DNA from: Isurus oxyrinchus
Taxonomy: Eukaryota
NCBI GenBank assembly: GCA_026770705.1
Contig: JANJGN010001130.1
Location: forward strand, 124,001-188,000
Length of the DNA: 64,000 nt
Direction of reading: 5' to 3'
Part shown: positions 20,355 to 56,670 of the stretch, piece by piece
How the letters are laid out: every line of letters starts with the position of its first letter
Numbering within the stretch: position 1 is the first letter of the stretch
Notes under the pieces: model-generated
Told to the model about the DNA's origin: nothing
The model's database searches: none
The model's input: only the letters and a program-made list of their open reading frames with translations
Translations under genes and position numbers: made by a program

Positions 20355-20394
20355 ATGATTGGAAAATCTTACTTCCTCCTGTCACTTCTCCAAG
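20355..20394 (+). CDS. Unit 5 leader exon (activating-type Siglec-like receptor, 281 aa)
   Basis: MIGKSYFLLSLLQ, phase-1 donor AAG|GTAACA. Confidence 0.85.
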
Positions 20395-21256
20395 GTAACA
20401 TCATCGTCAGCTCGGTCAGATTTATGGTTAATAGCCTTTGTAAAAGATCATTCTTATTGAACTGTGATTGGGAACCGATTCAGCAGTGAGCCAGTGTACA
20501 AACTCACACCAAGTCCCATTCACCCATCACCCCTAAACTATCTGACCCCTGGTCCTACAACATCTCAAACTTAAAATTCACATCTCTTTGTTCAAATGCA
20601 TCCATTGCCTCACACTGCGTCCTTATCTCTGTAACCTCCTGCAACTCTCCCAACCAACGTCCCAGATCTCTGTGTTACTCCAATTCTGGCCTCTTGACCA
20701 TCCCCCGATTCCCATCACTCCAATACTGGCAGCCGGGCCTTCAGCTGCCTGGGGCCTGAGCTCTGGAATTCACTCCCTAAACCTCGGGGATGGAGGAGCT
20801 CAGAGGGTTTCATTTTACTGAGAATCACCACGACCACATCACAGCTGCAGTCAGAATAGACAGGGAGTCCAGCCCTCACACTTCCTGCACAGTTTCACCA
20901 TAGCAACCACAATAAGGAAGTAAACTAACTGAAAGTTAAACTGAAGCTCAAACCAGTCGGTGTAGAGAGATGAGATGTTTACACAGTTTCCCTGTGTATC
21001 TTGTAGACACTGCGTTGGGTGGAAGACTGGCTTCACTAAACAGGGTCCTGAGGACCATGAGCCAATGTAGAATGAACTTGTCCACTCCTGTGTCCAGGAT
21101 TCTCTTCCATCCATTGTGAAACCTTGGGGAGTTCCATGTGTGTCCTGTAGATGGTCCACACAGCAGCCACTGTGCCCCAGTGATGGAGGGGGTGGATATC
21201 GAGTCTAGTGGATCTACAAACCATCCAGAGTTAAATATTGACATTTCTCTCCCCAG

Positions 21257-21625
21257 TTGGACTGTCACAAGAGTGGAAAGGTGACACTCCACGAGAGGTG
21301 ACAGCGCAGGAAGGTTCGTGTGTACAGATTCCATGTCATTACAGTTATCCAGCACATTTGGAAAATCAACCACGAGGTGGAGTCTGGTTTAATAATGAGA
21401 AACAGATTCCCTGGGCTCCCATTGCCTTTCACTCCAAGGGTCACAGTCACGAGTTACCACGGTTCCGCCATCGGACCCGGCTGTCTGGAGACCTGAAAGA
21501 TGGCGACTGTTCCCTGATTATAAACAACATCAGACGGGAAGATGCAGGACCTTATTTTTTCAGAATAGAATTTGACAATGGTCCGAGCCATAACTATTAC
21601 CCTGTAACCCAGCTTCACGTTTCTG
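21257..21625 (+). CDS. Unit 5 V-set sialic-acid-binding-type exon
   Basis: 369 nt open, phase 1-1; EGSCVQIPC, DCSL, essential Arg in GPYFFRIE. Confidence 0.9.
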
Positions 21626-22097
21626 GTAAGTGCTGTGTTATAATTACTCAACAATTCACATTCAACACTCAATGGGAAATAACACAAACTGTGACGTTTA
21701 CACATTAACACAAAACACAGCTTATTATAACACACTGTCTGATTCTCAATAACCTGGTGATAGCTTCCAGTTCAGTCCTAAAGCAACCTCTAATACTCAC
21801 TTTAATATCAATGATGAAAAACATTAACTGTATTCTCAGGTTATCCACTCCCATCAATCTCTCCTGTCCTGTTTAAAAGTCTGACGTATCGATAAAAGAA
21901 AGATGTGCATTTCTGCAGCGCAATTTACCACCTCAGGAGGATCCAAATCCCTTCACAGCCAATGAAATTATTCCTGAATTGTAGTCACAGATGTAAAACA
22001 CAGCAGGCAGTTTGTGCACAGCAAGATCCAACAAACCACAAGGTGATAAATCACCCAGATCACTGAGGAAATGAGAAGCCAGTGAACTCAAACCTCT

Positions 22098-22135
22098 GGT
22101 CTGATGAAGAGTCATACGGACTCGAAACGTTAACC
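22098..22135 (+). ncRNA. Hammerhead-like motif, unit 5 V-C2 intron
   Basis: Same motif as in unit 2. Confidence 0.55.
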
Positions 22136-22484
22136 CTGTCTTCCTCTCCACTGATACTGTCAGACCTGCTGAGTCTTTCCAGCAATTTTTGTTTTTGTTT
22201 CAGATTTCCAGCATCCACAGTATTCTGCTTTTAACTCCAATCTCTGGTCTGAGCCTCTTCTCTCATCCAGTGTTCTCAATTCACATGTCTCGGAGTGAAC
22301 GTGTATTAAGCTGAGAGACAGAAACACTACTGCCAAAGAGCAAGAAAATCTTTCCTGATCATTGTAACCTCTCAGTTCTGATATCATCCTTGTAAAAGTG
22401 CTTTCTCTTGTGGGACTGTGGTTTCTATTTGAACTGATGCTTCACGTTATATTTCTCTAAAAGGATCCATTCTCTGTCTGTTAG

Positions 22485-22781
22485 ATTTCACAGATAAACC
22501 CACGATATTCCCTGCTGAAATTATTGCAGGAAAGCGTGTGGATGTAAGCTGCACCTTCAACACAACATGCAATGGAACAGCAGCACCTGTCTTAACCTGG
22601 GACACTCCCACTGACGTACCTGGATCAGTCTCAAACACTGTAACTCAGCATGGTGTCACTCTGACCTATACTTCTGTTCTGACCCTGACCGCATCACTCA
22701 AACACCACGGACACACTCTCAGCTGCAGAGTGAGATATCCATCTGTTTCATCGGAGCGGACCCTCGTACTAACTGTGCAAG
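22485..22781 (+). CDS. Unit 5 C2-set exon
   Basis: 297 nt; DFTDKPTIFP..SCTFNTTCNG..LTW..HGHTLSCRV; three Cys as in Siglec domain 2. Confidence 0.9.
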
Positions 22782-23104
22782 GTAATTACATACACCTTTC
22801 ATTCTACATCAGCACTCCCTCAGCGCAGACCCTCTGACAGTGCAGCCCGTTCTCAGTACCCAAATTCTAAGGCCTCTCTAAGTGCTTCAAAGTCGATAGA
22901 AGTTAATTGATCTTTATTTGATTATTGCTGAATGAAGAGACAAGCTGTCTAAACTTTACATCTTGCACACAGCATTCTCTATGGCAACACCTCCACCTAT
23001 CAGAGACCACTTGCCAACCAATCAGCACTCTCTTCCCATTAAGTATAAATTGTTGTTCACTTTCTGTTGGTAATCCTGTGAACGGGCTTCTTGATTCCTG
23101 CCAT

Positions 23105-23249
23105 GACATCTGAATGTCCAAATGAACAGAACAAGTTCCAACAATGAGCTGTGGTTGGTGATTCCTCACGTTACATCCAGGAGACTATCAGTGTGTGGCA
23201 GAGAATGAACATGGAGCAGTGGATCGGTTCATAACCATCACTGTGGAAC
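23105..23249 (+). pseudogene. Unit 5 dead third-Ig half exon
   Basis: Only the 3' half of the 282-nt Ig exon remains; acceptor and 5' half replaced by repeat-like DNA; extra frameshifting deletion. Confidence 0.75.
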
Positions 23250-24918
23250 GTGAGTTACACAGACTTCAACATCTCTCTCAGATTTGAACACTACACAAAC
23301 ACCATCGAACACACACACATAAATAGACACGTGCAGACACACATATATGACCACACACAAAGACACACTCACACACAAACACTAACACTCACTCCCTCAA
23401 GTGTTACCTGACCTCCCTCAGTACTGCACAAGAGAGTTGGCCTGAATTCTGGGATTTGTGTTCCCATTCATATTTATGGAAGAATATGGAAATTACTATT
23501 ACAGACACTCAGATGCATAGAGACACTCACAGATACTCTCTGCGTCTCCAACTCTCTCTCTCCCTTTAAGAAGCTTCCTGAAACCGAACCCTTTGACAAA
23601 TCACCAACCCAACTCCTCCTTATCTGATTCTGTGTGATTTTCTTTGTGTATCTGAGAGTAAGAGAGAGTTGGAGAGGTTTAGGAAGAGAATTCCTGCTGG
23701 TGAAAAGCTTACATAATGTTCTCACTATTTCCGTGCACATAATTCCCATTATGTCCAATGCCCCTGTTTATAATGATGATTGCCTATGTAAACGTCACGC
23801 TGTAGTTACAGCCTCCCACCAGTGGTGGCATTGTAGCACTTAATCCTTGTGATTCCCAGTTTTCCCAGCAACTCTACTTCCCAGTTTGCTACACAAGCTG
23901 TGAGTTCTTCGGAATTCAATTATTTCTCAAACGGTAGATTTGATGTCATTTTATTGAAAACTTCCTGAGCTCATCCCTGAAGGGTTTACACTCTCCGGGA
24001 AGCAGGAATAGGCTGGATGTTGGGGAGTTCAACTTTTTCCAGAGAGTAGTGATCCTCGGGAATGTGCCGTCAGTGGGTGTGGTGGTTGCTGTTTCTCCGT
24101 CAACTTCAAGAGGGATCTGGAGTGGTTACTCACTGGGGGAGAGATCATGGAAGCGGAGAATGATACAGCACAGGAGGAGGCCATTCAGCCCATTGTGCCT
24201 GTGCCAGGTCTTTCAATGTTCTATCCCATCAGATCCACTAACCACCACTCCACTTTGCCCCCATCTTCCTCCTTCAAGTGTTTATCCAATTTCCCTTTTG
24301 AAAGTTCTTATTGAATCTGCTTCCACCGCCCTTTCAGGCAGAACCTTCCAGATCACAACAACTCGCTCTGTCAAAACAAATTCTCCTCATCTCCCCCTCT
24401 GGTTCTTCAATCTGTGTCCCTCTGGTTACCGACCCTCCTGCCCCTTAAATACATCGATCCTGTTCACCTCAACCACTCCCTGTGGGAGCGAGTTCCACAT
24501 TCTCCCCTCTCTCTGGGTAAAGATTGGAACTGTTTATTAAGCGGGGGGTGTATGTCCGTGGGGGAGTCCATCTCGATCCTGCCCTATTCGCACACGCGTC
24601 CGAGATGGATTTCCACCCGGCACTAAACGTTTCCAGAATTTTCTACAGCACAATCCTGTACACAGCGATGGAGAGAAACATTGGACAGGGAGTCCAACAG
24701 CACAATGATCCATTCTCACCAATGTTCCACGCTAAGGGGAAAGTTCCGATTGTCCACTCTTAGAGTGTTTACAATGAAAACATTCATTCCACATTGAATC
24801 CCAGTGGATGGGTCAATATTACAGCAAATGTTGCAGTGATATGAAGCTTGATTGTTCAGCCAGAGTGAGAGATTGAAAGCGGAGAGTCAGTGATGATTTC
24901 TTTCTGTGTGTTCTCTAG

Positions 24919-25058
24919 ACAGTGGAGGAGAGATTCTGCACGTGATCCTGATCCTGGGAATACGAGCTGTGATATTCCTTGTGGCTGTGGTTATCACTAT
25001 CGCTGGAGTCTGTGTCTGGGAGAGACAAACAGTGAAAGGAAGTCGACAGACTGTTTGA
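24919..25058 (+). CDS. Unit 5 TM + short tail exon with intramembrane Arg (activating type)
   Basis: TTCTCTAG|24919, phase 1: DSGGEILHVILILGIRAVIFLVAVVITIAGVCVWERQTVKGSRQTV*. Confidence 0.85.
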
Positions 25059-26399
25059 AGATTTGTACAGCAACAATCTCATCATGGAACAGAAGAACGG
25101 CATTTGGCCCATCGACTCCATGCTGTCTCTCTGTAAAGCAATACAGTCAGTTCCATTCCCCCGCTCTATCCCCGTATCCCTGCAAGTTTATTTCCCCTCA
25201 AGTGTCCATCCAATTTCCTTTTGAAATCGTTCATCGTCTCCGCTTCCACCATCCTCGTAGGCAGCGAGTTCCAGCTCATTACCACTCGCTGTGTAAAAAA
25301 GTTCCTCCTCACATCAACCCACTGCCCAAAACCTTCAATCTGTGTCCCCCAGTCCTTGTCCCATCAGCTAATGGCAACAGCTTCTCTTTGTCTACCTTAT
25401 CTAAACCCATCATCATCTTGTACACCTCGATCAGATCCCCGCTCAATCTCCTTTGCTCCAAGGAGAACAACCCCAGCTTCTCCAACCCAACCTTGTAGCT
25501 AAAATCCCTCATCCCTGGACCCATTCTGCTCAATCTCCTCCCCACCCTCTCAAGGACCCTCACTTCCTTCCCAAAGTGAGGAGACCAGAACTGGACACAA
25601 TACTCTAGTTGTGACCTAACCAGAGCTTTATAAATGTTCAGCATAACCTCCCTGTGTTTGTTCTCAATCCCTCGATTTATGAAAAGCTTATTCTTTCCAT
25701 CAGCACAAACAACAATTTCCAAGCGGACTCCCATCAGCAGACAGAGTGCAATGAAACATCGGCATGCCTGCTTCTTAATGTACGGAGAGAAACCTGGAAC
25801 GAGAGATTCTCCTTCTTCTCCTCAGCAAGCTGAAACTTTTCCTTATACCTGGTGCTCCCCAGTCCTGCTGTGTGGACACATCATAACCACGGCATTGTCT
25901 GGCTGTGTGCAGCCAACATGGTCGAATAGGAATGAACAGAAATGTGACATTGCTAAACTCTGTTCTCTGATTGGAATGTGCTTTCTGAATGCTGCACCTT
26001 TTTCATGCTGCGATAGATTGTAAGAAGCATTTGGGTTGTGAATAAAATTACATTGATTAACACAAGTGATTAAAATGCTCAGCCTGTTCTGTAAATATTT
26101 ATAGATTAAAATTCTTATTTTGCTGCCAAATTCTTGCCTCAAAGAAAAGCTTCTTGTTGTCACATTTTCTCCATCATATAAATTCCTGTGCCCATCCTTA
26201 TAATAGAAATTTCCAATGTAAACATGTCACATTGTAGTTGCACGCTCCTGCCAGTGGTGGTGCCATTCCAAAGCTGTCTTGCTGCACAGACACAGTGAGA
26301 ATTATTCTCGACTTGTACATGATGTTGTTGTTCCACAGACATTAGGCGGAATCTTGGGCAGTGCCTAGAATGCACTTAGGACAGTGCAGACCACGCTCA

Positions 26400-28220
26400 G
26401 AACTGACAGTGCAGCGTTTCATCAGTGCTGACCCTCCGTCAGTGCAGCGCTCCCTCATTACTGTCCCTCTGACAGTGCTGCACTACCTCATTATTGACCC
26501 TTTTCAAGTCCAGCACCCCGTCAGCACTGACCTTCTGACAGTGCAGCACTCCCTCATTGCTGACAATCTGACAGTGCAGCACTCCCTCAGTACTCTCCCT
26601 CCCACAGTGCAGTACTCCCTCAGTACTCACCCTCCCAAAGTGCAGCACTCCCTCAGTACTCACCCTCCCACAGTGCAGTACTCCCTCAGTACTCACCCTC
26701 CCAAAGTGCAGCATTCCCTCAGTACTCACCCTCCCACAGTGCAGCACACCCTCAGTACTCACCCATTCACAGTGCAGCACTCCATCAGTACTCACCCTCC
26801 CACAGTGCAGCACACCCTCAGTACTCACCCTCCCACAGTGCATCACTCCTCAGTACTCACCCTCCCACAGTGCAGCACACCCTCAGTACTCACCCTCCCA
26901 CAGTGCAGCACTCCATCAGTACTCACCCTCCCACAGTGCATCACTCCCTCAGTACTCACCCTCCCACAGTGCAGCACACCCTCAGTACTCACCCTCCCAC
27001 AGTGCAGCACTCCATCAGTACTCACCCTCCCACAGTGCAGCACACCCTCAGTACTCACCCTCCCACATTGCAGCACTCCCTCAGTACTCACCCTCCCACA
27101 GTGCAGCACACCCTCAGTACTCACCCTCCCACAGTGCAGCACTCCCTCAGTACTCACCTCCCACAGTGCAGCACTCCCTCAGTACTCACCCTCCCACAGT
27201 GCAGCACTCCCTCAGTACTCACCCTCCCACAGTGCAGCACTCCCTCAGTACTTACCCTCCCACAGTGCTGTGCGAGTTGTTTAAATCAAGACTGGTGCCC
27301 AAAGAGGGAGGTTTCAATGCTAAATCATTGAAATCGGTGAAAAATATTTTTAGGCTGAGGGGAACAAGACTTCGTTCCTCATATCCTTTCTTTAGCAATA
27401 ACACACAGTACTAGAATCTCTGTTTAAATAAATTCCAGTTAAACTTTGCCATGAAAGGATATCTTCTCACACACCGCTCTACCACAGTACTAACCCTCCC
27501 ACAGTCCGGCATCCCCTCAATACTGACCTCCGACTGTGCAAATCTCACCCAGTACAGACCCGCTGACAGTTCAGCACTCCCTTATTACTGATCCTCGGAC
27601 AGTGCAGCACTCCCACATTACTGTCCCTCTGACAGTGCAGCACTCCCACATTACTGACCCTCTGACAGTGCAGCACTCCCACATTACTGTCCCTCTGACA
27701 GTGCAGCACACCCTCAGTACTGACCCTCCGACATTGCAGCATTCCTTCACTACCTGCCCTCTGACAGTGCAGCACTCCCACGTTACTGACCCTCTGATAG
27801 TGCAGCAGACCCTCAGTACTGACTCCACTAACACTGCAGCACTCGCTCAGTACTGACCCTCCCACAGTGCAGCACTCCCTCAGTACTATACTCCTGACAG
27901 TGAAGCACTCCCTTATTAATGACGCTCTTCCAGTGCAGCACTTCCACCTTACTGACCCTCTGACAGTGCAGCACTCCCACATTACTGACCCTCTGACAGT
28001 GCAGCACTCCCACATTACTGTCCCTCTGACAGTGCAGCACTCCCTCAGTACTGACCCTCCGACATTGCAGCAATCCTTCACTACTGGACCTCTGACAGTG
28101 CAGCAATCCCACATTACTGACCTTCTGATAGTGCAGCACTCACTCAGTACTGACCCTCACACAGTGCAGCACTCCCTCAGTACTATATCCCTGACAGTGC
28201 AGCACTCCTTCAGTAATGAT
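26400..28220 (+). repeat. 33-bp minisatellite arrays (26400-27270 and 27480-28220)
   Basis: Tandem units; the first array is homogenised to the ACTCACCCTCCCACAGTG variant. Confidence 0.95.
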
Positions 28221-29027: not shown

Positions 29028-29067
29028 ATGATCGGGAAATCTTACTTCCTCCTGTCACTTCTCCAAG
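29028..29067 (+). CDS. Unit 6 leader exon (activating-type receptor, 281 aa)
   Basis: MIGKSYFLLSLLQ, AAG|GTAATA. Confidence 0.8.
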
Positions 29068-30269: not shown

Positions 30270-33077
30270 CAACTGGGGAGGTTTTAAACTAACATGGCAG
30301 GGGATGGGATCCCGAGAGGAGGTTCAGCAGAGGGAGATGCACAGCCAAAATTAGAAGAGAGAGCAAGTGAACCTGGAAGGCAGAGAAATTATTGGCCAGT
30401 TAAGGCACAAGATAGCGTAGCAAAGTTGGATTGTATTTATTTTAATGCAAGGAGTCTGACGAATAAAGCAGATGAGTTGAGGTCACAAATAACACATGGA
30501 TGTATGATGTCATTGCTGTCCCAGAGACATGGTTGAGAGAGGGGCAGGATTGGCAGCTCAATATTACAGGATACAGGGTCTTCTGGCAAGACAGGGAAGG
30601 AGGTAAAAGAGGAGGGGGTATTGCAAGATTGATCAAGGAATCAGTTATTGCAGTGAGGAGGGAAGACACCTTAGGGGGCTCCTCAAATGAAGCCATATGG
30701 GTAGAACCTAAAAACAAATAAGGAGCAATCAGCTTGCTGGGAGTGTTCTACAGGCCCAATGACACTCAGAGAAATAGAAGTGCAGATACAAAGGCAAAAT
30801 TCAGAGAAGTATAAAAATAATCGGGTTGTAATGGTGGGGCTTTTCACCTTCCCCAACAATAACTGGGTTAGTCATAGTGTGATAGTTTTCGAGGGGGCAG
30901 AATTGTTAAAATGCATCCAGGAGAGATTTTTAAGCCAGTACATAGAAAATCCTACAAGAGAGGGGTCGGTCCTGGAGTAAATTTTAAGGAATGTAACCAG
31001 GCAAGTTGTAGACGTATCAGTGGGGGAGCATTGTGCAGATAGTGATCATCATTCCATTAGATTCTAGGTTGTTATGGAAAAGAACAAGGATGGGCCAGAA
31101 ATCTGATTTCTCAATTGGGGGAAGGCTGATTTTAATAAGATCAAATATGATTTGGCCAGAGTGGAACTGGGAGCAGCTACCTTTAGGGAAATCTGCGTCA
31201 GAGCAATGGGACTCATTCAGGAAGGAAGTGGGGAGAGCACAGGGCCAACATATTCCAGTAAAGGCAAAGGGTGGGACCAACAAATCCAGGGAATCCTGGA
31301 TGTCGAGAGATTTACAGGATTGGATAAAGAGAAAAAGGGAGGCTTATGGCAGATACCGAGGGCTCAAAACAGTGGAAGCCTTAGAAGAGTATAGAATGTG
31401 TAGGGGGGACCTTAAAAAGAAAATTAGTAGAGCAAAAATGGGGCATGAAGAAACATTAGCAGGAAAAATGAAGGAAAATCCAAAGTTATTTTACAAGTAC
31501 ATTAAGAGTAAGAGGCTAACTAGGGAAAGAGTAAGGCCCATTAAGGACCATATTGGTAGTTTGTGTGTGGAACCGGAAGATGTAGGTAGGGTTCTAAATG
31601 AACACTTTGTGTCAGTGTTCACAAGTGAGAGGGGCAATGTGGGTTTGGAAATCAGGCAGAAGGACTGTGATATAGTTAAAGAAATTAGAATAGAAAGGGA
31701 GGAGGTTCTAAGTGGTCTGGCAGTCTCAAACGTAGATATATCTGCAGGCCCGGATGAAATGTATCTCAGGCTGTTGAGTGAGGCAAAGGAGGAGATAGCA
31801 GGGGTGCTGGCAATAATTTTCAATACATCTCTGGCCAGAGGAGAGGTACCAGAGGACTGGAGGACAGCCAATGTGGTAGCGTTATTCAAGAAGTGAGGAA
31901 GGGATAAACCAGGGAACAACAGGTCAGTCAGTCTAACCTCAGTGGTGGGGAAACTATTGAAAGCAATTCTGAGGGACAGAATTAATCTACACTTGGAGAG
32001 GCAGGGATTAATCAAGGACAGTCAGCATGGTTTTGTTAAAGGGAGGTCATGTCTGACCAGTTTGATTGAATTTTTTGAAGAGGTGACCAATTGTGTAGAT
32101 GAGGGCAATGAATTTGACATAGTCAACTTGGACATCAGCAAGGCTTTTGATAAGGTCCAGCATGGGAGACTGTAAACAAAAGTAAGAGCACATGGGATCC
32201 AAGGGAATTTGGCAAATTGGATCCAGAATTGGCTGAGTGCCAGGAAGTAGAGGGTGATGGTCGACGGGTGTTTTTGTGACTGGATGCCTGTGTCCAGTGG
32301 GGTTCCACAGGGATCGGTGTTGGGTCTCTTGCTGTTTGTGGTATATATAAACGGTCTAAACTTGAATGTAGGAAGGTTGATCAGTGACTTCGCGGATGAT
32401 ATGGAAATTGATGGGGTGGTAAATAATGAAGAGGATAGCCTTAGATTACAGGGGGATATAGATGGGCTGGTCAGATGGGCTGATCAGTGCCAAATGGAAT
32501 TTAACCTGGATAAGTGTGAGGTGATGCACTTGGGCAGGATAAACAAGGCACAGGAATAGACAATGAATGGTAGGACCCTGGAAAGTAACAAGGATCAGAG
32601 GGACCTTGGTGTGCATGTCCACCGTTCCCTTAAAGTAGTGGGACAGGTGGATAAGGTGGTTAAGAAGGCATATGGAATACTTGCCTTTATTAGCCGAGAG
32701 ATAGAATATAAGAGCAGGGAGGTTATGCTGGAACTGTATAGAACACTGGTTAGGCCACAGCTAGAATATTGCGTGCAGTTCTGGAACCTGCATTATAGGA
32801 AGGATGTGATTGCCCTCGAGAGGGTGCAGAGGAGATTTACCAGGATGTTGCATAGATTGAATCTGGAACTCACTGCCTGAAAGGGTGGGAGAGGCAGAAA
32901 CCCTCATAACATTTAAGAAGTATTTGGATGTGCACTTGTGATGCCATCGCATACAAGGCTTTGGGCCCAGTGCATTAATGGGATTAGAATAATTAGGTAC
33001 TTGTTTGACCGACGCAGATTCGATGGGCCAAAGGGCCTTTTACTGTGCTGTAGAACCCTGTGAATCTATGACTCTAT
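30270..33077 (+). mobile_element. Decayed CR1-type LINE (APE endonuclease + RT) in the unit 6 leader-V intron
   Basis: Fragmented ORF2: CIYFNARS, ETW, QHGFVKGRSCLT, SKAFDKV, VPQGSVLG, FADD, LEYCVQFW; many stops and frameshifts; CTATGACT-type tail. Confidence 0.95.
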
Positions 33078-37932: not shown

Positions 37933-38301
37933 TTGGACTGTCACAAGAATGGGAAAGTAACACTCCACGAGAGGTGACAGCGCAGGAAGGTTCATGTGTA
38001 CAGATTCCATGTCATTACAATTACCCATCACATTTGTTAGAGAAAACACGTGTCGGAATCTGGAATATGAGGAGGGACAAATGGAATACATTGTCTATAG
38101 CCTTTCACTCCAAGGATCACAGTCACGATTTACCACGGTTCCACCATCGGACCCGGCTGTCTGGAGACCTGAAAGATGGCGACTGTTCCCTGATTATAAA
38201 CAACATCACACGGGAAGATGCAGGACCTTATTTTTTCAGAATAGAATTTGACAATGGTCCGAGCCATAACTATTACCCTGTAACCCAGCTTCACGTTTCT
38301 G
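37933..38301 (+). CDS. Unit 6 V-set exon (most divergent C-C' region)
   Basis: 369 nt open; EGSCVQIPC...RVGIWNMRRDKWNTLSIAF...GPYFFRIE. Confidence 0.9.
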
Positions 38302-40024: not shown

Positions 40025-40321
40025 ATTTCACAGATAAACCCACGATATTCCCTGCTGAAATTATTGCAGGAAAGCGTGTGGATGTAAGCTGCACCTTCAA
40101 CACAACGTGCAATGGAACAGCAGCACCTGTCTTAACCTGGGACACTCCCACTGACGTACCTGGATCAGTCTCAAACACTGTAACTCAGCATGGTGTCACT
40201 CTGACCTATACTTCTGTTCTGACCCTGATCCCATCACTCAAACACCACGGACACAATCTCAGCTGCAGAGTGAGATATCCATCTGTTTCATCGGAGCGGA
40301 CCCTCGTACTAACTGTGCAAG
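40025..40321 (+). CDS. Unit 6 C2-set exon
   Basis: 297 nt open, AG/GT intact. Confidence 0.9.
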
Positions 40322-41920: not shown

Positions 41921-42060
41921 ACAGTGGAGAAGAGATTCTGCACGTGATCCTGATCCTGGGAATACGAGCTGTGATATTCCTTGTGGCTGTGGTTATCACT
42001 ATCGCTGGAGTCTGTGTCTGGGAGAGAAAAACAGTGAAAGGAAGTCGACAGACTGTTTGA
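41921..42060 (+). CDS. Unit 6 TM + short tail exon with intramembrane Arg
   Basis: DSGEEILHVILILGIRAVIFLVAVVITIAGVCVWERKTVKGSRQTV*. Confidence 0.85.
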
Positions 42061-43404
42061 AGCTTTGTGCAGCAACAATCTCATTATGGAACAGAAGGAC
42101 GGCATTCAGCCCATCGACTCCATGCTGTCTCTCTGTAGAGCAATACAGTCAGTCCCATTCCCCCGCTCTATCCCCGTATCCCTGCAAGTTTATTTCCCCT
42201 CAAGTGTCCGTCCAATTTCCGTTTGAAATCGTTCATCGTCTCCGCTTCCACCATCCTAGTAGGCAGCGAGTTCCAGCTCATTACCACTCACTGTGTAAAA
42301 AAGTTCCTCCTCACATCCCCCCTCTGCCCAAAACCTTCAATCTGTGTCCCCCAGTCCTTGTACCATCAGCTAATGGCAACAGCTTCTCTTTGTCTGCCTG
42401 ATCTAAACCCATCATCATCTTGTACACCTCGATCAGATCCCCCCTCAATCTCCTTTGCTCCAAGGAGAACAACCCCAGCTTCTCCAACCCAACCTTGTAG
42501 CTAAAATCCCTCATCCCTGGACCCATTCTGCTCAATCTCCTCCCCACCCTCTCAAGGACCCTCACTTCCTTCCCAAAGTGAGGAGACCAGAACTGGACAC
42601 AATACTCTAGTTGTGACCTAACCAGAGCTTTATAAATGTTCAGCATAACCTCCCTGTGTTTGTACTCAATCCCTCAATTTATGAAAAGCTTATTCTTTCC
42701 ATCAGCACAAACAGCAATTTCCAAGCGGACTCCCATCAGCAGACAGAGTGCAATAAAACATCGACATGCCTGCTTCTTAATGTACGGAGAGAAACCTGGA
42801 ACGAGAGATTCTCCTTCTTCTCCTCAGCAAGCTGAAACTTTTCCTTATACCTGGTGCTCCCCAGTCCTGCTGTGTGGACACATCATAACCACGGCATTGT
42901 CTGGCTGTGTGCAGCCAACATGGTTGAATAGGAATGAACAGAAATGTGACGTTGCTAAACTCTGTTCTCTGATTGGAATGTGCTTTCTGAATGCTGCACC
43001 TTTTTCATGCTGCGATAGATTGTAAGAAGCATTTGGGTTATGAATAAAATTACATTGATTAACACAAGTGATTAAAATGCTCAGCCTGTTCTGTAGATAC
43101 TTATGGATTAAAATTCTTATTTTGCTGCCAGATTCTTGCCTCAAAGAAAAGCTTCTTGTTGTCACATTTTCTCTATTATATAAATTCCTGTGCCCATCCT
43201 TATAATAGAAATTTCCCATGTAAACATGTCACATTGTAGTTTCACACTCCTGCCAGTGGTGGTGCCATTCCAAAACTGTCTTGCTGCACAGACACAGTGA
43301 GAAATATTCTCGATGTGTACATGATGTTGTTGTTACACAGACATCAGGCGGAATCTTGGGCAGTGCCTAGAATGCACTTAGGACAGTGCACACCACACTC
43401 AGAA

Positions 43405-45060
43405 CTGACAGTGCAGCGTTTCCTCAGTGCTGACCCTCCGTCAGTGCAGCGCTCCCTCATTACTGTCCCTCTGACAGTGCTGCACTACCTCATTATTGAC
43501 CCTTTTCAAGTGCAGCACCCCGTCATCATTGACCTTCTGACCGTGCAGCACTCCCTCATGGCTGACACTCTGACAGTGCAACAATCCCTGAACACTGACC
43601 CTCTGATACTGTACCCCTCCATCACTAATGACTTTCCAACAGTTCAGCACTCCCTAGGTACAGACCCTCTGACAGGGCAGCATTCCATCAGTATTCAAAC
43701 TCCCACTATGCAGCTGTCCCTCAGGATTCTCCCCCCCACAATGCAGCACTCCCTCAGTACTCTCCCTCCCACAGTGCAGTACTCCCTCAGTACTCACCCT
43801 CCCACAGTGCAGCAATCCCTCAGTACTCTCACTCCCACAGAGCAGTACTCCCTCAGTACTCACCCTCCCACAGTGCAGCACTCCCTCAGTACTCACCGTC
43901 CCACAGTGCAGCACACCCTCAGTACTCACCCTCCCACAGTGCAGCACTCCATCAGTACTCACTCTCCCAAAGTGCAGCACTCCCTCAGTACTCACCCTCC
44001 CACAGTGCAGCACTCCCTCAGTACTCACCCTCCCACAGTGCAGCACACCCTCAGTACTCACCCTCCCACAGTGCTGTGCGAGTTGTTTAAATCAAGACTG
44101 GTGCCCAAAGAGGGAGGTTTCAATGCTAAATCATTGAAATCGGTGAAAATTATTTTTAGGCTGAGGGGAACAAGACTTAGTTCCTCATATCCTTTCTTTA
44201 GCAATAACACACAGTACTAGAATCTCTGTTTAAATAAATTCCAGTTAAACTTTGCCATGAAAGGATATCTTCTCACACTCCTCTCTACCTCAGTACTAAC
44301 CCTCCCACAGTCCGGCACCCCCTCAATACTGACCCTCCGACTGTGCAAATCTCACTCAGTACAGACCCGCTGACAGTTCAGCACTCCCTCATTACTGATC
44401 CTCTGACTGTGCAGCACTCCCTCATTAAGGACCCTCTTCCAGTGCAGCACTCCCACATTACTGTCCCTCTGACAGTGCAGCACTCCCACATTACTGACCC
44501 TCTGACAGTGCAGCACTCCCACATTACTGTCCCTCTGACAGTGCAGCACTCCCTCAGTACTGATCCTCCGACATTGCAGCATTCCTTCACTACTGGCCCT
44601 CTGACAGTGCAGCACTCTCACATTACTGACCCTCTGATAGTGCAGCAGACCCTCAGTACTGACCCCACTAACAGTGCAGCACTCGCTCAGTACTGACCCT
44701 CCCACAGTGCAGCACTCCCTCAGTACTATACTCCTGATAGTGAAGTACTCCCTTATTAATGACCCTCTTCCAGTGCAGAACTCCCACATTACTGACCCTC
44801 TGACAATGCAGCACTCCCACATTACTGACACTCTGACAGTGCAGCACTCCCACATTACTGTCCCTCTGACAGTGCAGCACTCCCTCAGTACTGACCCTCC
44901 GACATTGCAGCAATCCTTCACTACTGGCCCTCTGACAGTGCAGCAATCCCACATTACTGACCTTCTGATAGTGCAGCACTCACTCAGTACTGACCCTCAC
45001 ACAGTGCAGCACTCCCTCAGTACTATACCCCTGACAGTGCAGCACTCCTTCAGTAATGAT
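43405..45060 (+). repeat. 33-bp minisatellite arrays (43405-44075 and 44290-45060)
   Basis: Tandem units; paralogous to 26400-28220. Confidence 0.95.
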
Positions 45061-45867: not shown

Positions 45868-45907
45868 ATGATCGGGAAATCTTACTTCCTCCTGTCACTT
45901 CTCCAAG
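45868..45907 (+). CDS. Unit 7 leader exon (inhibitory-type Siglec-like receptor, 596 aa)
   Basis: MIGKSYFLLSLLQ, AAG|GTAATA. Confidence 0.85.
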
Positions 45908-46767: not shown

Positions 46768-47136
46768 TTGGACTGTCACAAGAGTGGAAAGGTGACACTC
46801 CACGAGAGGTGACAGCGCAGGAAGGTTTCTGTGTACAGATTCCATGTCATTACAGTTATCCATCACATTTGGAAAATCAACCGCGAGGTGGAGTCTGGTT
46901 TAATAATGAGAAACAGATTCCCTGGGCTCCTATTGCCTTTCACTCCAAGGATCACAGTCACGAGTTACCACGGTTCCGCCATCGGACCCGGCTGTCTGGA
47001 GACCTGAAAGATGGCGACTGTTCCCTGATTATAAACAACATCACACGGGAAGATGCAGGACCTTATTTTTTCAGAATAGAATTTGACAATGGTCCGAGCT
47101 ATAACTATTACCCTGTAACCCAGCTTCATGTTTCTG
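46768..47136 (+). CDS. Unit 7 V-set exon
   Basis: 369 nt open; EGFCVQIPC, DCSL, GPYFFRIEFDNGPSYNY. Confidence 0.9.
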
Positions 47137-47608: not shown

Positions 47609-47646
47609 GGTCTGATGAAGAGTCATACGGACTCGAAACGTTAACC
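47609..47646 (+). ncRNA. Hammerhead-like motif, unit 7 V-C2 intron
   Basis: Same motif as in unit 2. Confidence 0.55.
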
Positions 47647-47995: not shown

Positions 47996-48292
47996 ATTTC
48001 ACAGATAAACCCACGATATTCCCTGCTGAAATTATTGCAGGAAAGCGTGTGGATGTAAGCTGCACCTTCAACACAATGTGCAATGGAACAGCAGCACCTG
48101 TCTTAACCTGGGACATTCCCACTGACGTACGTGGATCAGTCTCAAACACTGTAACTCAGCATGGTGTCACTCTGACCTATACTTCTGTTCTGACCCTGAT
48201 CCCATCACTCAAACACCATGGACACACACTCAGCTGCAGAGTGAGATATCCATCTGTTTCAGCAGAGCAGACCCTCGTACTAACTGTGCAAG
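47996..48292 (+). CDS. Unit 7 C2-set exon
   Basis: 297 nt open, AG/GT intact. Confidence 0.9.
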
Positions 48293-48511: not shown

Positions 48512-48604
48512 ATGCACCACAGAATCTCTCATTTACTTCGCTTGATATGATTAATGCTTCATCGATCAATATAATTGAGGGGTTCATAACCATCACTGTG
48601 GAAT
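48512..48604 (+). CDS. Unit 7 mini-exon: Ig exon collapsed in frame to a 31-aa linker
   Basis: TTCTTAG|48512..48604|GTGAGT, 93 nt; [31 protein letters not shown]. Confidence 0.65.
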
Positions 48605-48627
48605 GTGAGTTAATGCAAACTTCAACA

Positions 48628-48664
<37 letters not shown>

Positions 48665-49244: not shown

Positions 49245-49526
49245 ATGCACCACGGAATCTCTCAATTACTTCTCTTGGTGTGATTAACGCTTTATCGATC
49301 GATGTAATTGAGGGGAATTCTGCAGTGATAATCTGCTCTGTCGAGAGCTTCCCAGCTTCTAACCTGACGTGGCGACATCTTAATGTCCCAATGAACAGAA
49401 CAAATTCCAACAATGAGCTGTGGTTGGTGATTCCTCACGTTACATCCAGGGACACTGGAGACTATCAGTGTGTGGCAGAGAATGAACATGGAGCAGTGGA
49501 GGGGTTCATAACCATCACTGTGGAAC
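49245..49526 (+). CDS. Unit 7 third Ig (C2/I-type) exon
   Basis: 282 nt; APRN..EGNSAVIICSVESFPASNLTW..DTGDYQCVAENEHG. Confidence 0.9.
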
Positions 49527-50186: not shown

Positions 50187-50468
50187 ATGCACCACAGAAT
50201 CTCTCATTTACCTCTCTTGATATGATTAATGCTTCATCGATCAATATAATTGAGGGGAATTCTGCAGTGATAATCTGCTCTGTCGAGAGCTTCCCAGCTT
50301 CTAACCTGACGTGGCGACATCTTAATGTCCCAATGAACAGAACAAGTTCCAACAATGAGCTGTGGTTGGTGATTCCTCACGTTACATCCAGGGACACTGG
50401 AGACTATCAGTGTGTGGCAGAGAATGAACATGGAGCAGTGGAGGGGTTCATAACCATCACTGTGGAAT
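50187..50468 (+). CDS. Unit 7 fourth Ig exon (tandem duplicate of the third)
   Basis: 282 nt, near-identical to 49245-49526. Confidence 0.9.
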
Positions 50469-51270
50469 GTGAGTGTGGAGATACATTTGTTTGTTTGTTG
50501 TCTCCGTGGTCTCCGTGGAGCCATTGGGATCGTGTTGTTTTTAATCCAGTTTTCTTCAGTCCTCGCTCAGTCCACGTTATCCACACATCCAATTTTTCCT
50601 CTCCCTTTCTGTTTTTGCTCTCAGTTTCTCCTTCAATGGTTGTGAGGACAAGGCTGTCAGGTCTTCGTTTCCAATCTCCGTACTTGACGACCTTTCTCTC
50701 TCTAACTGTCCTGAACAACCCTTTTAATTGCTGAACTTCTCATTCTTTAATTGATAAATATTATATATAAATGTTACATGTTGAAATGCAATACCTGTAT
50801 TCATAAATTGCTTAGAAATTACTAAACATTCAACAGCCAGTGAAGCATTATCGAAGTGAGCTCACTGTTGTAATGTAGGAAACACAGGTACTGATTTGTG
50901 CACAGCAAGATCCCGCAAACCACCGTGTGATAATGACCTGATAGTCGATTATTTCAGTGAGGTTGGTTGTTACATGTGTAGAGACTACATACCCTTTAGG
51001 GAGGGAAGCATGTGGATGTGACTCCAGTCTCAGACACCAACATGGTTAACTCTTACCTGCCCTCTGAACTAGTCTCCCAGTTTGGGACAAACCAGTGGTT
51101 CAGGAGGAAGACCCCCCACCACCTTCTCAAGGGGAAACTAGGGATGGACAATAAATGTCAGCATTGCCCGAGAATGAGTATTTAAACACTGAGTGAGTGT
51201 ATCGCTTCTCGAGATACATCGGAGCATCATTGTAAATCTGTAGTGCAGTAATTAATGGCTGTTTTTACAG

Positions 51271-51367
51271 GTAGAGACTCTAGTAAATGGACAGTAGGAT
51301 TGTTCACGGCTGGGATCATGTTGAGTGTTTTCCTGGCTGGAATCTTCATCTTCATCTGTGTGAGAAA
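51271..51367 (+). CDS. Unit 7 neutral TM exon
   Basis: TTTTACAG|51271..|GTAAGT, phase 1-2: CRDSSKWTVGLFTAGIMLSVFLAGIFIFICVRK. Confidence 0.88.
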
Positions 51368-51539
51368 GTAAGTCTGAAGATTTAACTTGATTTTAATATA
51401 AACATTTGTTGAGGACTAATTAGACAGTTTTTACAAAGGGCCAGCACAGGCACGATGGGCTGAGTGGCTTCCTCCTGAGCTGTGAGATTTTTAATTCTTT
51501 CATCGAATGTGGCTGTCACTGGTGAGGCCGCTATTAATT

Positions 51540-51955
51540 GCCCATCTCTAATTGCCCCTTGAGAAGGAGGTAGTGAGCTGCCTTCTTGACCCGCTGCAGT
51601 CCATGAGGTGTAGGTACACCCACAGTGCTGTTAGAGAGGGAGTTCCAGGATTTTGACCCAGCGACAGTGAAGGAACGGTGATATATTTCCAAGTCAGGAT
51701 GGTGAGTGACTTGGAGGGCAACTTCCAGGTGGTGGTGTTCCCATGTGTCTGCTGCCCTTGTCCTTCTAGATGGTAGAGGTCGTGGGTTTGGAAGGTGCTG
51801 TTGAAGGAGCCTTGCTGAGTTGCTGCAGTGCATCTTGTAGATGGTACACACACTGCTTCCACTGTGTGTTCATGGTGGAGGGAGTGAATGTTTAATGTGG
51901 GGGATGGGGTGTAGATCAATCGGGCTGCTTTCTCCTGGATGGTGTCAAGCTTCTT
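51540..51955 (-). mobile_element. LINE 3' fragment (duplicated at ~54385-54795)
   Basis: Reverse complement matches the + strand LINE end at ~58520-58940. Confidence 0.75.
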
Positions 51956-52090
51956 GATTCTGTGCTTTGTGCAGAAGTGATTTAAAGAGACAGTCCCTGT
52001 CATTGGTGTAAGGTTACAGTGGGCTCTGTGTCTGTGCTGCACTGACTCTCTGCTATATGATAACCACAGTGTGATATTGTGTTATTGCAG

Positions 52091-52172
52091 GAGAAAGACA
52101 GCGATGGAGGAGAGAGTTTCAGGGACCAGTGACATTGCATTGACCCCCAGTCCACTCTCTGTGAAGCGCCAG
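52091..52172 (+). CDS. Cytoplasmic exon 1, copy A
   Basis: TTGCAG|..CAG|GTACAG, 82 nt, phase 2-0: RKTAMEERVSGTSDIALTPSPLSVKRQ. Confidence 0.8.
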
Positions 52173-52307
52173 GTACAGGAGCTGTTTACACTCACTCCAA
52201 AGCTTCAATCTTAGTGTGTAGACAACACATGTCCCAGATTCCCAGCCCAGTTACCCACTGATTTGTACCTGTGGAGTCAGCAATGGTTCAGTATCACGCT
52301 GCCTCTC

Positions 52308-53062
52308 TGTTATGACACAGCAACTGGTAAAGGCTGTTGTTTAAAATCCCAGAAGGAAACTTTAAACAACTGTCATAACCTATATTTCCCAGTGGAATGT
52401 TTGAGATGCAGCTTTAGATTCAGGAATAAGACCATCAGTTCTCGGGATGGTTTTATATCAAACTACATGAGACATTTATTAATTTACACAAGTTAAACAT
52501 ATGCACATGGCTACAAACTAGTATTATCATAACTTTTTAACAAATTCTCTAACTAATCTCCTCTAAGATAACCCATAGAATTTAAGCAGATTCCAGGCAA
52601 AGCATTTTCACCTCACAAATTCCAAATGAGGTTCCTTTCACTTTGGTTCCTTTGCAGACAGGTGTAGGCTTACAGCTGCTTTGCTGTTACAAGCCTCTGC
52701 TCTGCACACACAAAACTGCTCAAGTTATACCCAGCTCTTCTCTTTGAATGTAAATTCTCATTGTATCATCAGGACCTTTGAACTCCATTTCTTCTAATAA
52801 TAAATCCCCTTTCATAGTATCAATTTTATTCGTATTATAAACGTTGATTGGTTTAAGATTTCACCCCCAGACATTGCGCTGTTCAAAAATACAAATTGTC
52901 TCTTTGCCTCCCTGTTTACATCTCAAAACTACGATACATCAAAGTACCCAGACTGGCTGGCTTTAATCCAATTAAAACACACACACACACACCCACAGAC
53001 TAAACCACTATTTTAATAAAAATAATTTCCAAAACATGATATTCATTAATCGCATCATGACA
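52308..53062. mobile_element. Solo-LTR-like element (second copy 55146-56026)
   Basis: TGTTATGA...TCATGACA / TCATAACA termini. Confidence 0.65.
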
Positions 53063-53533
53063 TTCTCTCTCTCTATCCCTACCTCCCTTTCTTTCTCTCT
53101 CTCTTCTGTCTCTCATCCTCTCTCTGATTACAAGGGTGATGTCAATGAGCCTCACACCAGACACTTGAGTGCAGAATCCAAGCCATCACTCACCAGAGCC
53201 ATTACCGAGGGAGTGCGAGACTGACAGAGGGTCAGTACTGAGGGAGTGCTGCACTGCCGGAGGGTCAGTACTAAGGGAGTGCTGCACTGTCGGAGGGTCA
53301 GCACTGAGGGAGTGCGAGACTGACAGAGGGTCACTACTGAGGATGTGCTGCACAGTGGGGGGGATCAGAACTGAGGGAGCACTGCACTGCCGTAGGTGGT
53401 TTCTTTCAGATGACATGAGAGAGAGAGTTAAACCCATTGAGACCGACTGACACTAGCGAGGCTGCACAATAATTTAACCCTATCAGTGCCAGTAAATGAT
53501 GTGAGGATGTCTTCTGTTTCCATTTCTCTGTAG

Positions 53534-53782
53534 GGTAAACAGAACGTGCTGATTACTGAGTCCCAGAACACAACCAGAGACACAACTAGCGAGGGGGAGA
53601 CCCCAGTTCCCCGGGGTCTCTCTGAAGGTCCAGTGGGAGGCGATGCTGGACATTGGCACACCGACAATCCCGTTGCCCTTCTCTACTCCAATCCCCAAGT
53701 TTTGAGGATATCCAGTGGTGATGGTTCTGTCCACAGGGAAGAGGAGACGGAATACGCACAGATCAGGTTCGAGCATAACTGA
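53534..53782 (+). CDS. Terminal cytoplasmic exon, copy A: degenerate ITIM (LLYSNP) + ITSM (TEYAQI)
   Basis: CTGTAG|53534, phase 0, open to TGA at 53782. Confidence 0.8.
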   Translation, partial: GKQNVLITESQNTTRDTTSEGETPVPRGLSEGPVGGDAGHWHTDNPVALLYSNPQVLRISSGDGSVHREEETEYAQIRFEHN

Positions 53783-54928
53783 ATGAGAAATGGGGAGAGT
53801 GAGTGAGGAGGTGTGGGTGTGGGGGTAGGGATTGAGATTCCTGGGAACAGGAAACAACCCACTGGGGGAGAGGGGGAGAGAGGGAGGAAGGGATGCAATT
53901 GGGCTGCGGTTGGTGTGGTTTGGAATGAAATGCTTCTCCAGAGAGGACTGGATGCTGAGCCATTGGGGAGTGAGATTCACTGTCTCTCTCTCTCTCTCTC
54001 TCTCTCTCCCTCTCTCTCTCTTTCTTTCTGTGTCTGTCTCTCATTCCCTATCTCCAGCTCCTCCTTTAAGATGCCCGTTAATAACTGACTTTGTTGACTC
54101 AGCTGTTGGTCTCCTGTCCCTAATATCTCCTCATGTGCCTCAGAGTCAGGTGAAGATGTGACTAACAATCCCCGGATGAGCCTTGGGACATTTTGCTACA
54201 TTGAAGGTGCTATATAAATGCAAGTAGTTGTAGTAACTCTGATCTGCTTCGATTAACAATGGAACCACAAAGGCTCCTTCGACAGGGCGTGTGTGCAGCA
54301 GGATCACAGTAAATACATTGAGCTGTGAGATTTTAAATTCTTTCATCGAATGTGGCTGTCACTGGTGATGTCAGCATTAATGCCCATCCCTAATTGCCCT
54401 TGAGAAGGTGTGGTGAGCTGCCTTCTTGACCCGCTGCGGTCCATGTGGTGTAGGTACACCCACACTGCTGTTAGGGGGGAGCTCCAGGATTTTGACCCAG
54501 CGACAGTGAAGGAACGGTGATATATTTCCAAGTCAGGATGGTGAGTGACTTGGAGGGGAACTTCCAGGTGGTGGTGTTCCCATGTGTCTGCTGCCCTTGT
54601 CCTTCTAGATGGTAGAGGTCGTGGGTTTGGAAGGTGCTGTTGAAGGAGCCTTGCTGAGTTGCTGCAGTGCATCTTGTAGATGGTACACACACTGCTGCCT
54701 CTGTGTGTTCATGGTGGAGGGAGTGAATGTTTAATGTGGGGGATGGGGTGTAGATCAATCGGGCTGCTTTGTCCTGGATGGTGTCAAGCTTCTTGATTCT
54801 GTGCTTTGTGCAGAAGTGATTTAAAGAGACAGTCCAGTCGTTGGTGTAAGGTTACAGTGGGCTCTGTGTCTGTGCTGCACTGACTCTCTGCTATATGATA
54901 ACAACAGTGTGATATTGTGTTATTGCAG

Positions 54929-55010
54929 GAGAAAGACAGCGATGGAGGAGAGAGTTTCAGGGACCAGTGACATTGCATTGACCCCCAGTCCACTCTCTGT
55001 GAACCACCAG
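54929..55010 (+). CDS. Cytoplasmic exon 1, copy B
   Basis: 82 nt: RKTAMEERVSGTSDIALTPSPLSVNHQ. Confidence 0.8.
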
Positions 55011-56421
55011 GTACAGGAGCTGTTTACACTCACTCCAAAGCTTCAATCTCAGTGTGTAGACAACACATGTCCCAGATTCCCAGCCCAGTTACCCACTGAT
55101 TTGTACCTGTGGAGTCAGCAATGGTTCAGTATCATGCTGTCTCTCTGTTATGATACAGCAACTGGTAAAGGCTGTTGTTTAAAATCCCAGAAGGAAACTT
55201 TAAACAACTGTCATAACCTATATTTCCCAGTGGAAGGTTTGAGATGCAACTCTAAATTCAGGAATAAGACCACCAGTTCTCAAGATGGTTTTATATCAAA
55301 CTACATGAAACATTTATTAATTTACACAAGTTAAACATATGCACATGGCTACAAACTAGTATTATCATAACTTTTTAACAAATTCTCAAACTAATCTCCT
55401 CTAAGACAACCCATTGTCTTTAAGCAGACACCAGGCAAAGCATTTTCACCTCACAAATTCCAAATGAGTTTCCTTTCACTTTGGTTCCTTTGCCGACAGG
55501 TGTAGGCTTACAGCTGCTTTGATGTTACAAGCCTCTGCTCTGCACAAACAAAACTGCTCAAGTTATACCCAGCTCTTGAGTGTAAAGAAGATGGAGATTG
55601 ACAGGCTGCTGATTGGTAAGGGGATCAAAGGTTAGGGGAGAAGGTGGGAAAATGGACCGAATGGTCTAATTACTCATCCTAAGTCTTAGTCTTATGGCTT
55701 CTGTTTGAAGGTAAATTCGCAATGTATCATCAGGACCTTTGAACTCCATCTCTTCTAACAATAAATCCCCTTTCATCGTATCAATTTTATTAGTAATATA
55801 AACGTTGATTGGTTTAAGATTTCACTCTCAGACTTTGAATGTTTTATTTAAAAATGCAAATTACCACTTTACCTCTTTGTTTACATCTCAAAACTACTAT
55901 ACATCAAAGCACCCAGACTGGCTGGCTTTAATCCAATTAAAATACACACAGACACACACACAGACTAAACCTCTGTTTAAAAAGACAGTTTGCAATTACA
56001 TTACATACATTAATAGATTCATAACACTCTGTCTCTATCCCTCCTCTATCCCTCTCTCTCATCCTCTCTCTGATTACAAGGTTCATGTTATTGAGCCTCA
56101 CACCAGGCACCTGTGTGCAGCATCCAAGCCGTCACTCACCAGAGCCATTACCGAGGGAGTGCGGGACTGACAGCGGGTCAGTACTGAGGGAGTGCTGCAC
56201 TGTTGGAGGGTCAGTACTGAGGGAGTGCTGCACTGTTGGAGGGTCAGCACTGAGGGAGTGCTGCACTGTTGGAGGGTCAGTACTGAGGAAGTGCTGCACT
56301 GCCATAGGTGGTTTCTTTTATCCGGTAGGAGAGAGAGAATTAAATGACTCCGCACAATAATTTAACCCTATCAGTGCCAGTAAATGATGTGAGGATGTCT
56401 TCTGTTTCCATTTCTCTGTAG

Positions 56422-56670
56422 GGTAAACAGAACGTGCTGATTACTGAGCCCCGGAACACAACCAGAGACACAACTAGCGAGGGGGAGACCCCAGCTCCCC
56501 GGGATCTCTCTGAAGGTCCAGTGGGAGGCGATGTTGGACATGGGAACTCCGACAAACCCGACGAGCTTTTCTACGCCAACATCAACTTTTCAAAGCTGCC
56601 CGGCGGTGACAGGACTGTGCACAGGAGCGAGGACACGGAATACACACAGATCAGGTTCCAGAAAAACTGA
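56422..56670 (+). CDS. Terminal cytoplasmic exon, copy B: ITIM (ELFYANINF) + ITSM (TEYTQI)
   Basis: CTGTAG|56422, open to TGA at 56670; matches the CD33-related Siglec pattern ELxYAxLxF...TEYSEI. Confidence 0.88.
   Translation, partial: GKQNVLITEPRNTTRDTTSEGETPAPRDLSEGPVGGDVGHGNSDKPDELFYANINFSKLPGGDRTVHRSEDTEYTQIRFQKN

Follow-up and report, generated by a model that had tools for sequence, protein, structure and literature searches.

Seven receptor units were located in a 64-kb window of the Isurus oxyrinchus genome (the whole stretch of 64,000 bases analysed here, from contig JANJGN010001130.1) by searching for leaders and by mapping homology to shark proteins. The segment 20355-56670 of this window, in which a first-pass annotation made from the sequence alone had proposed a cluster of paired activating and inhibitory Siglec-like receptors, probably contains three tandem genes (units 5, 6 and 7) from an extensive family of Siglec-type receptors that sharks and rays possess. 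Units 5 and 7 probably constitute a paired receptor, in which one recently copied or homogenised front end is mounted on two unrelated signalling ends; a probability of about 0.75 is assigned to this explanation taken as a whole. In all, the window has two intact genes of the activating type and one of the inhibitory type, besides one pseudogene and three fragments. The proposed organisation of one inhibitory gene with an expanding set of activating counterparts is borne out in its first term; the second amounts to the two intact genes, the pseudogene and the fragments.

Units 5 and 6, like all the receptor exons described here, lie on the plus strand and share the architecture leader, V-set domain, C2-set domain, transmembrane (TM) segment with a buried arginine and 12-residue tail. 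Unit 5 comprises a leader exon (20355-20394; start MIGKSYFLLSLLQ, donor CAAG followed by GTAA, phase 1), a Siglec-type V-set exon with the YFFR arginine present (21257-21625), a C2-set exon (22485-22781) and the exon encoding the arginine-bearing TM segment, the Tyr-free tail and the stop (Arg-TM exon, 24919-25058). In unit 6 the corresponding exons are located at 29028-29067 (leader), 37933-38301 (V-set, of a divergent V type), 40025-40321 (C2-set) and 41921-42060 (Arg-TM), the last having 138 of its 140 bases as in unit 5. The 8.9-kb intron 1 of unit 6 contains a broken long interspersed nuclear element (LINE) in sense orientation, with endonuclease and reverse transcriptase pieces (30294-32880).

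Both Arg-TM exons are preceded by a pyrimidine tract and AG. The exon encodes a hydrophobic span of 24-29 residues with the core GIRAVIF, in which the arginine lies ~6-11 residues from the start, followed by 12 residues without tyrosine (unit 5: ERQTVKGSRQTV; unit 6: ERKTVKGSRQTV) and a stop codon. The membrane arginine and short Tyr-free tail previously attributed to these two units are confirmed, with a tail of 12 instead of ~11 residues, and the listing of open reading frames (ORFs) indeed gives another frame at this exon, as had been remarked. A third Arg-TM exon (14467-14606), identical to that of unit 5, belongs to unit 3 (leader, V, C2 and Arg-TM exon, 9892-14606), which lies outside the segment first delimited. 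Unit 3 is a pseudogene in this assembly because codon 12 of its V exon (10793-11161) is an in-frame stop. On the minus strand the same retroelement-like ORF recurs some 250 bases downstream of every Arg-TM exon (14831-15376, 25309-25734 and 42311-42646). These ORFs have no Pfam match and resemble the C-terminal part of LINE ORF2 proteins; they may have come along with the Arg-TM cassette, or may supply its 3' end.

Unit 7 begins with the same leader-V-C2 front (leader 45868-45907, V-set 46768-47136, C2-set 47996-48292) and continues with three further immunoglobulin (Ig) exons: Ig3a, a 93-base in-frame remnant from which the Ig core is deleted (48512-48604), and the two intact exons Ig3b (49245-49526) and Ig3c (50187-50468), both of Ig_3/I-set type. 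The TM exon (51271-51367), sole copy of its kind in the window, encodes a span without charged residues. It is followed by two cytoplasmic cassettes. Cassette A consists of a small cytoplasmic exon (52091-52172) and tail exon A (53534-53782), which encodes LLYSNP, the ITSM (immunoreceptor tyrosine-based switch motif) TEYAQI and a stop. Cassette B, a tandem copy of A, consists of a cytoplasmic exon (54929-55010) and tail exon B (56422-56670), which encodes the ITIM (immunoreceptor tyrosine-based inhibitory motif) LFYANI and, 23 residues away, the ITSM TEYTQI, followed by a stop; it is the only unit 7 tail with both motifs. The duplication, of ~2.3-2.8 kb, begins after the single TM exon; identity between its copies is 95-98% in the surroundings of the small cytoplasmic exon and 81-90% in those of the tail exon. 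Since that TM exon is upstream of both cassettes, cassette B can be used only by splicing past cassette A. Tails of type A are found in the white shark models P0027 and P0018, and those of type B in basking shark P0015 and white shark P0016; both types are old and are employed elsewhere. Pfam gave no family match for the tail exons.

Throughout units 5-7 the exon borders are of the AG...GT type with compatible phases: phase 1 for the leader, V, C2 and Ig exons and for the start of the TM exon, phase 2 at the end of the unit 7 TM exon and phase 0 at the end of the cytoplasmic exon. The three junctions predicted by the first-pass annotation (22781>24919, 40321>41921 and 50468>51271) proved exact, with GT..AG ends and phase 1 on both sides, and the exon models reproduce to the base the structure leader-V-C2-Arg-TM that it had given for units 5 and 6.

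The close relationship of units 5 and 7 is confined to the front end. Their V domains differ at 9 of 369 bases and at 5 of 122 residues, which are exactly the five differences (S20F, A32S, G61D, R92T, H111Y) initially counted over ~123 residues; the C2 domains differ at 7 of 98 residues. Identity is 95.8% over 455 bases upstream of the leader, 95.8% in intron 1, 97.6% in the V exon, 98.0% in intron 2 and 96.3% in the C2 exon, and is about 52% after C2, where the two sequences are unrelated. The common front end of ~2.9 kb includes the likely promoter, the leader, V and C2 exons and the introns between them. As the two genes are 96-98% identical up to the end of C2 and unrelated thereafter, they represent a true pair generated by recent duplication or conversion. 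The pairing of activating with inhibitory receptors suspected from the sequence is upheld in that this front end is common to both gene types.

The history of the short form can be read from the intron between C2 and TM. In all three Arg-TM units (3, 5 and 6) this intron retains the remnant of half an Ig3 exon (the 3' half, 23105-23248 in unit 5) with one common break point, from which it follows that a single deletion in a long form bearing Ig3 gave rise to the short form and that duplication of the latter came afterwards. Comparison with unit 5 shows unit 6 to be a mosaic: its C2 and Arg-TM exons are 98.7% and 98.6% identical to those of unit 5, intron 3 is only 89.4% identical, and the V exon with its flanking introns only 83-89%. 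The amino acid changes in the unit 6 V domain are concentrated at residues 29-54, with a ratio of non-synonymous to synonymous substitution rates (dN/dS) of about 1.0; we take these residues to be the variable C-C' region that sets glycan preference in Siglec structures. The nearest relative of this V domain is the first of two V domains of the white shark protein P0035.

Assignment of the front end to the Siglecs relies on several comparisons. The V exon matches the Pfam families V-set and Ig_CD22 above their cut-offs, the following exon C2-set_2, and the extra exons of unit 7 Ig_3/I-set. Among solved structures, those matched by the V exon at E-values of 1e-15 to 1e-13 are Siglec-7, Siglec-5, MAG, Siglec-8 and CD33 (to 1e-12 with Siglec-10 and sialoadhesin included). 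Bit scores are 60 for Siglec-7, 59 for Siglec-5 and 56 for MAG; Siglec-15 (35 bits) and CD22 are far behind, and PILR matches only at an E-value of about 1e-3. The YFFR of units 5, 6 and 7 aligns on the conserved F-strand arginine (YFFR) of Siglec-7 and Siglec-5, and the A-strand Trp and the V cysteines C21, C26 and C84 are invariant or nearly so in the family alignment. For the V exon of unit 5, the AlphaFold model derived from a 40-row family alignment has a predicted local distance difference test score (pLDDT) of 92. Foldseek ranks 1-46 for this model are all Siglec V domains, with template-modelling (TM) scores of 0.79-0.89 (MAG, sialoadhesin, CD33, Siglec-7, -8, -10 and -5); MOG, pIgR and other non-Siglec V domains rank below 46. 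Over its full length the C2 exon can be aligned to domain 2 of CD33 and of MAG. It contains SCTFNTTCNGT and a later Cys; together with the V cysteines this pattern fits the Siglec scheme of a B-E intrasheet pair and one further bond between V and domain 2. Membership of the V domain in the Siglec family is well supported, as far as sequence and modelled fold can indicate, and the Siglec-like ectodomain of the original description stands. MAG and sialoadhesin are about equal to CD33-related Siglecs by sequence and better by fold, which makes assignment to the CD33-related group tentative.

The proteins closest to the V exon are RefSeq models from white shark (91%) and small-spotted catshark (79%), with whale shark, skates, sawfish and mantas lower, and the best 120 family-profile matches are all from sharks and rays; the cartilaginous-fish origin suspected from the sequence is thus correct, and the best matches indicate a shark near to white shark and basking shark. 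Short and long architectures both occur among RefSeq models of white shark, basking shark, catsharks and bamboo shark, and in white shark a short (P0001) and a long (P0027) form lie on one contig. The Arg-TM cassette with its short tail is present in white shark (P0001, P0029, P0030), two catsharks (P0002, P0007, P0013, P0087) and bamboo shark (P0123). Across these species the cassette, including its arginine, is kept at 76-91% protein identity, which argues for selection on the membrane arginine. A search with the cassette region, restricted to shared words and to proteins of 148-472 residues, returned only Siglec-like proteins of white shark and catsharks. The exon is common to lamniform, carcharhiniform and orectolobiform sharks and is therefore presumably older than about 180 million years. 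Two further variants were seen in the family: 17 of 130 fetched proteins have 2-4 tandem Siglec-type V domains, and the skate members P0107, P0108, P0115 and P0127 have a third type of back end, with a neutral TM segment and a tail of 6-7 residues without charge or tyrosine motifs.

The binding domains do not follow the signalling ends. In a tree of 99 shark V domains with a ray outgroup, the 11 activating V domains are scattered among inhibitory ones, which indicates repeated re-pairing; the alignment has few columns and the tree many open forks, so that re-pairings cannot be counted exactly. Among 48 strictly labelled rows there were 8 label changes, compared with a mean of 9.8 for shuffled labels. 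A single clade of activating V domains was rejected, the best constrained tree being 237 log-likelihood units worse (approximately unbiased test, p-AU 0.0004), and the starred branches alone force at least three re-pairings. An activating V domain usually stands beside an inhibitory V domain of its own species, for example P0087 with P0032, and P0002 within an unresolved group that includes P0046. It appears from these comparisons that the signalling exon is old and conserved and that the binding end has been exchanged repeatedly. The suggestion that the pairs evolved independently is supported, as regards their origin inside sharks, by this scatter.

Splicing of the activating form was followed in contigs of four public RNA-like runs (X6 and X15 from organism A, X17 and X18 from organism B), aligned to unit 5 only (20355-25100). 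The leader-V joint (20394>21257) occurs in three of the four (X6, X15, X18), and the V-C2 (21625>22485) and C2-Arg-TM (22781>24919) joints in all four, the ends of each of the three being GT..AG and falling on the predicted bases. Depth in X17 and X18 is 200-770 over the V exon bins and 0-5 over the neighbouring intron bins, and these two runs therefore look like RNA. Contigs using the Arg-TM exon, whose absence the first-pass annotation had named as fatal to its proposal, are present in all four.

At the level of sequence, splicing and evolution the interpretation first offered for this segment is supported. [quoted passage not shown] Units 5 and 6 would pair in this way with an adaptor of the DAP12 or FcR-gamma kind and activate the cell. 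Unit 7 would recruit SHP-type phosphatases via its phosphorylated ITSM/ITIM and dampen the cell, through either the tandem ITIM-ITSM of tail B or the ITSM of tail A by itself. Units 5 and 7 would be co-expressed and would have one ligand in common, most probably a sialylated glycan bound via the conserved F-strand arginine. The sequences TEYAQIRF and TEYTQIRF of the unit 7 tails resemble the PD-1 ITSM consensus (T/V)EYATIx(F/Y), and the SH2 sites of SHP-1 and SHP-2 are conserved from sharks to humans (PMC12151841). The adaptor of Siglec-14, -15 and -16 is DAP12 or DAP10 (PMC7226832).

Several observations count against the paired-receptor interpretation. The LLYSNP of tail A, with Pro at position +3, is not a canonical ITIM and is followed by the ITSM TEYAQI; of the neutral TM segment and ITIM/ITSM tails originally ascribed to unit 7, the TM segment and tail B stand, and tail A has an ITSM only. 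Neither AATAAA nor ATTAAA was found within ~800 bases past the stops of units 3 and 5 or of tail A, and the sense-strand LINE in intron 1 could impair expression of unit 6. According to a survey of 2014, the FcR gamma chain originated at the level of bony fish (PMC4016189). The RNA label of the four runs is a guess and their contigs carry no expression levels; moreover, these contigs were placed at 92% likeness within a large gene family, so that the joints may stem from paralogs of unit 5. Finally, identity between units 5 and 7 is equal in introns and exons, and plain recent duplication is therefore sufficient, with no need of selection for matched binding.

This last point leads to the alternative that survives best, that of a multigene family evolving by birth and death with no functional pairing. 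Front and back ends would be shuffled at random through tandem duplication and unequal crossing-over, the likeness of units 5 and 7 would reflect only the age of their last duplication, and ligands and cells need not be common. The uniform identity of introns, upstream flank and exons is as it would predict; dN/dS between units 5 and 7 is unremarkable (0.44 in V, 0.75 in C2), and the window contains the broken units 1, 2, 3 and 4 and 33-base minisatellites after every unit. However, both back ends are conserved across shark orders and front ends have been swapped repeatedly between them, and the 455 shared bases upstream (95.8%) suggest common regulation. We consider the absence of pairing rather unlikely; it would in any case leave the encoded products unchanged and alter only whether the pairing is selected.

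It is somewhat less probable still that the V domain has the Siglec fold but a main ligand other than sialic acid, for example a protein or a structure of a pathogen. The YFFR arginine is missing from the list of positions 90% conserved in the wider family, and the ray and catshark members P0011, P0012 and P0013 have E, K or S in its place; some human Siglecs have likewise lost the sialic-acid arginine. The position of the Siglec-7 G-strand Trp, moreover, falls on Ser in pairwise alignment with the V exon. These substitutions are to be set against units 5, 6 and 7 themselves, in all of which YFFR, the A-strand Trp and the trio of Siglec-type cysteines are retained, and against the fold search, in which the 46 top-ranking matches are all sialic acid-binding Siglec domains.

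That the short Arg-TM forms are non-signalling decoys or transcribed relics is improbable. In its favour, the pseudogene unit 3 has an identical TM exon and a canonical polyadenylation signal is lacking close to the stop. Against it stand the maintenance of the arginine-bearing cassette in white shark, two catsharks and bamboo shark (protein identity 76-91%) and the splicing of this exon in contigs of the four RNA-like runs. An assembly artefact (haplotypes, or collapsed or expanded repeats) is hardly credible and was rejected on inter-unit divergence and different 3' halves: the region is rich in tandem repeats and the best DNA runs contain only about 0.55 of the sampled words, but the units differ by 2-4% (5 vs 7, 5 vs 3) or 11-17% (5 vs 6, V and flanking introns), which would be far above the allelic level, they are separated by a LINE insertion and wholly different 3' halves, the unit 5 stretch is present in DNA runs of several studies and two organisms, and in white shark short and long forms share one contig.

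The remainder of the window holds repeats and broken units. The 33-base minisatellite that follows every receptor unit has 13-55 copies in its longer arrays, which lie at 1227-2130, 2720-3572, 6781-7717, 8306-9059, 16032-16468, 18924-19524, 26406-28215 and 43407-45059; two arrays between the unit 7 tail cassettes (53208-53396 and 56149-56301) have only 3-5 copies. Its open frames yield the TVQHSLSTDPP-like repeated peptides of the ORF listing. In units 1 and 2 its start coincides with the point at which the C2 exon breaks off (about 1215 and 6769), so that the repeat seems to have cut these units short; it may also drive unequal crossing-over. The V exon of unit 2 (5306-5671) has in addition lost three bases and lacks the Cys of the IPC motif, and unit 4 (17893-18712) has no V exon and consists of a C2 exon and the remains of a leader that lacks ATG. 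Beyond unit 7 there are a further reverse transcriptase fragment (57934-58401), four N-masked stretches (60227-62019) and a purine-rich array with periods of 6, 12 and 327 bases, which reaches the end of the window (62319-64000).

RefSeq predictions in white shark, basking shark and catsharks are already named CD33-like or Siglec-14-like, and the genes are therefore known as predictions. Full-text literature searches returned no paper on paired Siglecs, or on an expansion of Siglecs, for sharks or rays; in the genome paper of the whale shark, Siglecs figure only in a list of Ig-domain gene families. The first-pass annotation, whose author knew of no description in this lineage, agrees in this with the literature searches. 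The result is a case of paired Siglecs in a new lineage with its own conserved Arg-TM cassette; it is relevant to comparative immunology and glycobiology and implies no change of paradigm. Paired Siglecs are cited in textbooks as evidence that host self-recognition and sialic acid-coated pathogens are engaged in an arms race and, to our knowledge, have so far been documented mainly in primates. A shark and ray family with the same modular logic would place the paired-Siglec strategy at the base of the jawed vertebrates, or show convergence, and the shark units provide concrete genes with which to ask which adaptor sharks use. As a tentative scenario, which we hold to be less likely than not, early jawed vertebrates had a fast-evolving cluster of CD33-type ITIM-ITSM Siglecs that was lost in teleosts, and an old shark Arg-TM exon repeatedly captured inhibitory front ends as a long-running counter to pathogens that mimic sialic acid, independently of primate Siglec-5/14 and Siglec-11/16.

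Among known systems comparable to the shark genes are these primate pairs. Human Siglec-5/14 are known as paired receptors (PMC4042635). It is established for this pair and for Siglec-11/16 that, as in the sharks, V domains (and C2 domains) are near-identical, that a partner with ITIM/ITSM-like motifs is opposed to one with a basic TM segment and short tail, and that local duplication or conversion, introns included, preserves the resemblance. In contrast to them, the shark pairs arose separately inside sharks; their Arg-TM exon is distinct, occurs in several orders of shark and has been combined anew with many front ends, and the inhibitory gene (unit 7) has two alternative tail cassettes. 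The CD33-related Siglecs of mammals as a group have the same order of V-set, C2-set, TM segment, ITIM and distal TEY..I/V and likewise form a tandem, fast-changing cluster. Siglec-7 and Siglec-5 give the top V sequence scores and RefSeq names shark members CD33-like, but this likeness need not mean orthology, since MAG and sialoadhesin score about as well by sequence and better by fold. In a study of teleosts, fish genomes were reported to lack CD33-related (inhibitory) Siglecs (PMC7226832).

Siglec-15, an activating Siglec that fish and mammals have in common, resembles units 5 and 6 in having a basic TM residue and couples to DAP12/DAP10 (PMC7226832). Unlike them, it uses Lys, is a single conserved gene without an inhibitory twin, and matches the shark V exon with 35 bits as against 60 for Siglec-7. 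The KIR, LILR, PILR, CEACAM1/3 and Xenopus CEACAM pairs follow a comparable principle, a shared ectodomain with opposite signalling that evolves by duplication and exchange (PMC5112662). They differ from the shark pair in belonging to other domain families, the shark binding domain being a Siglec V-set.

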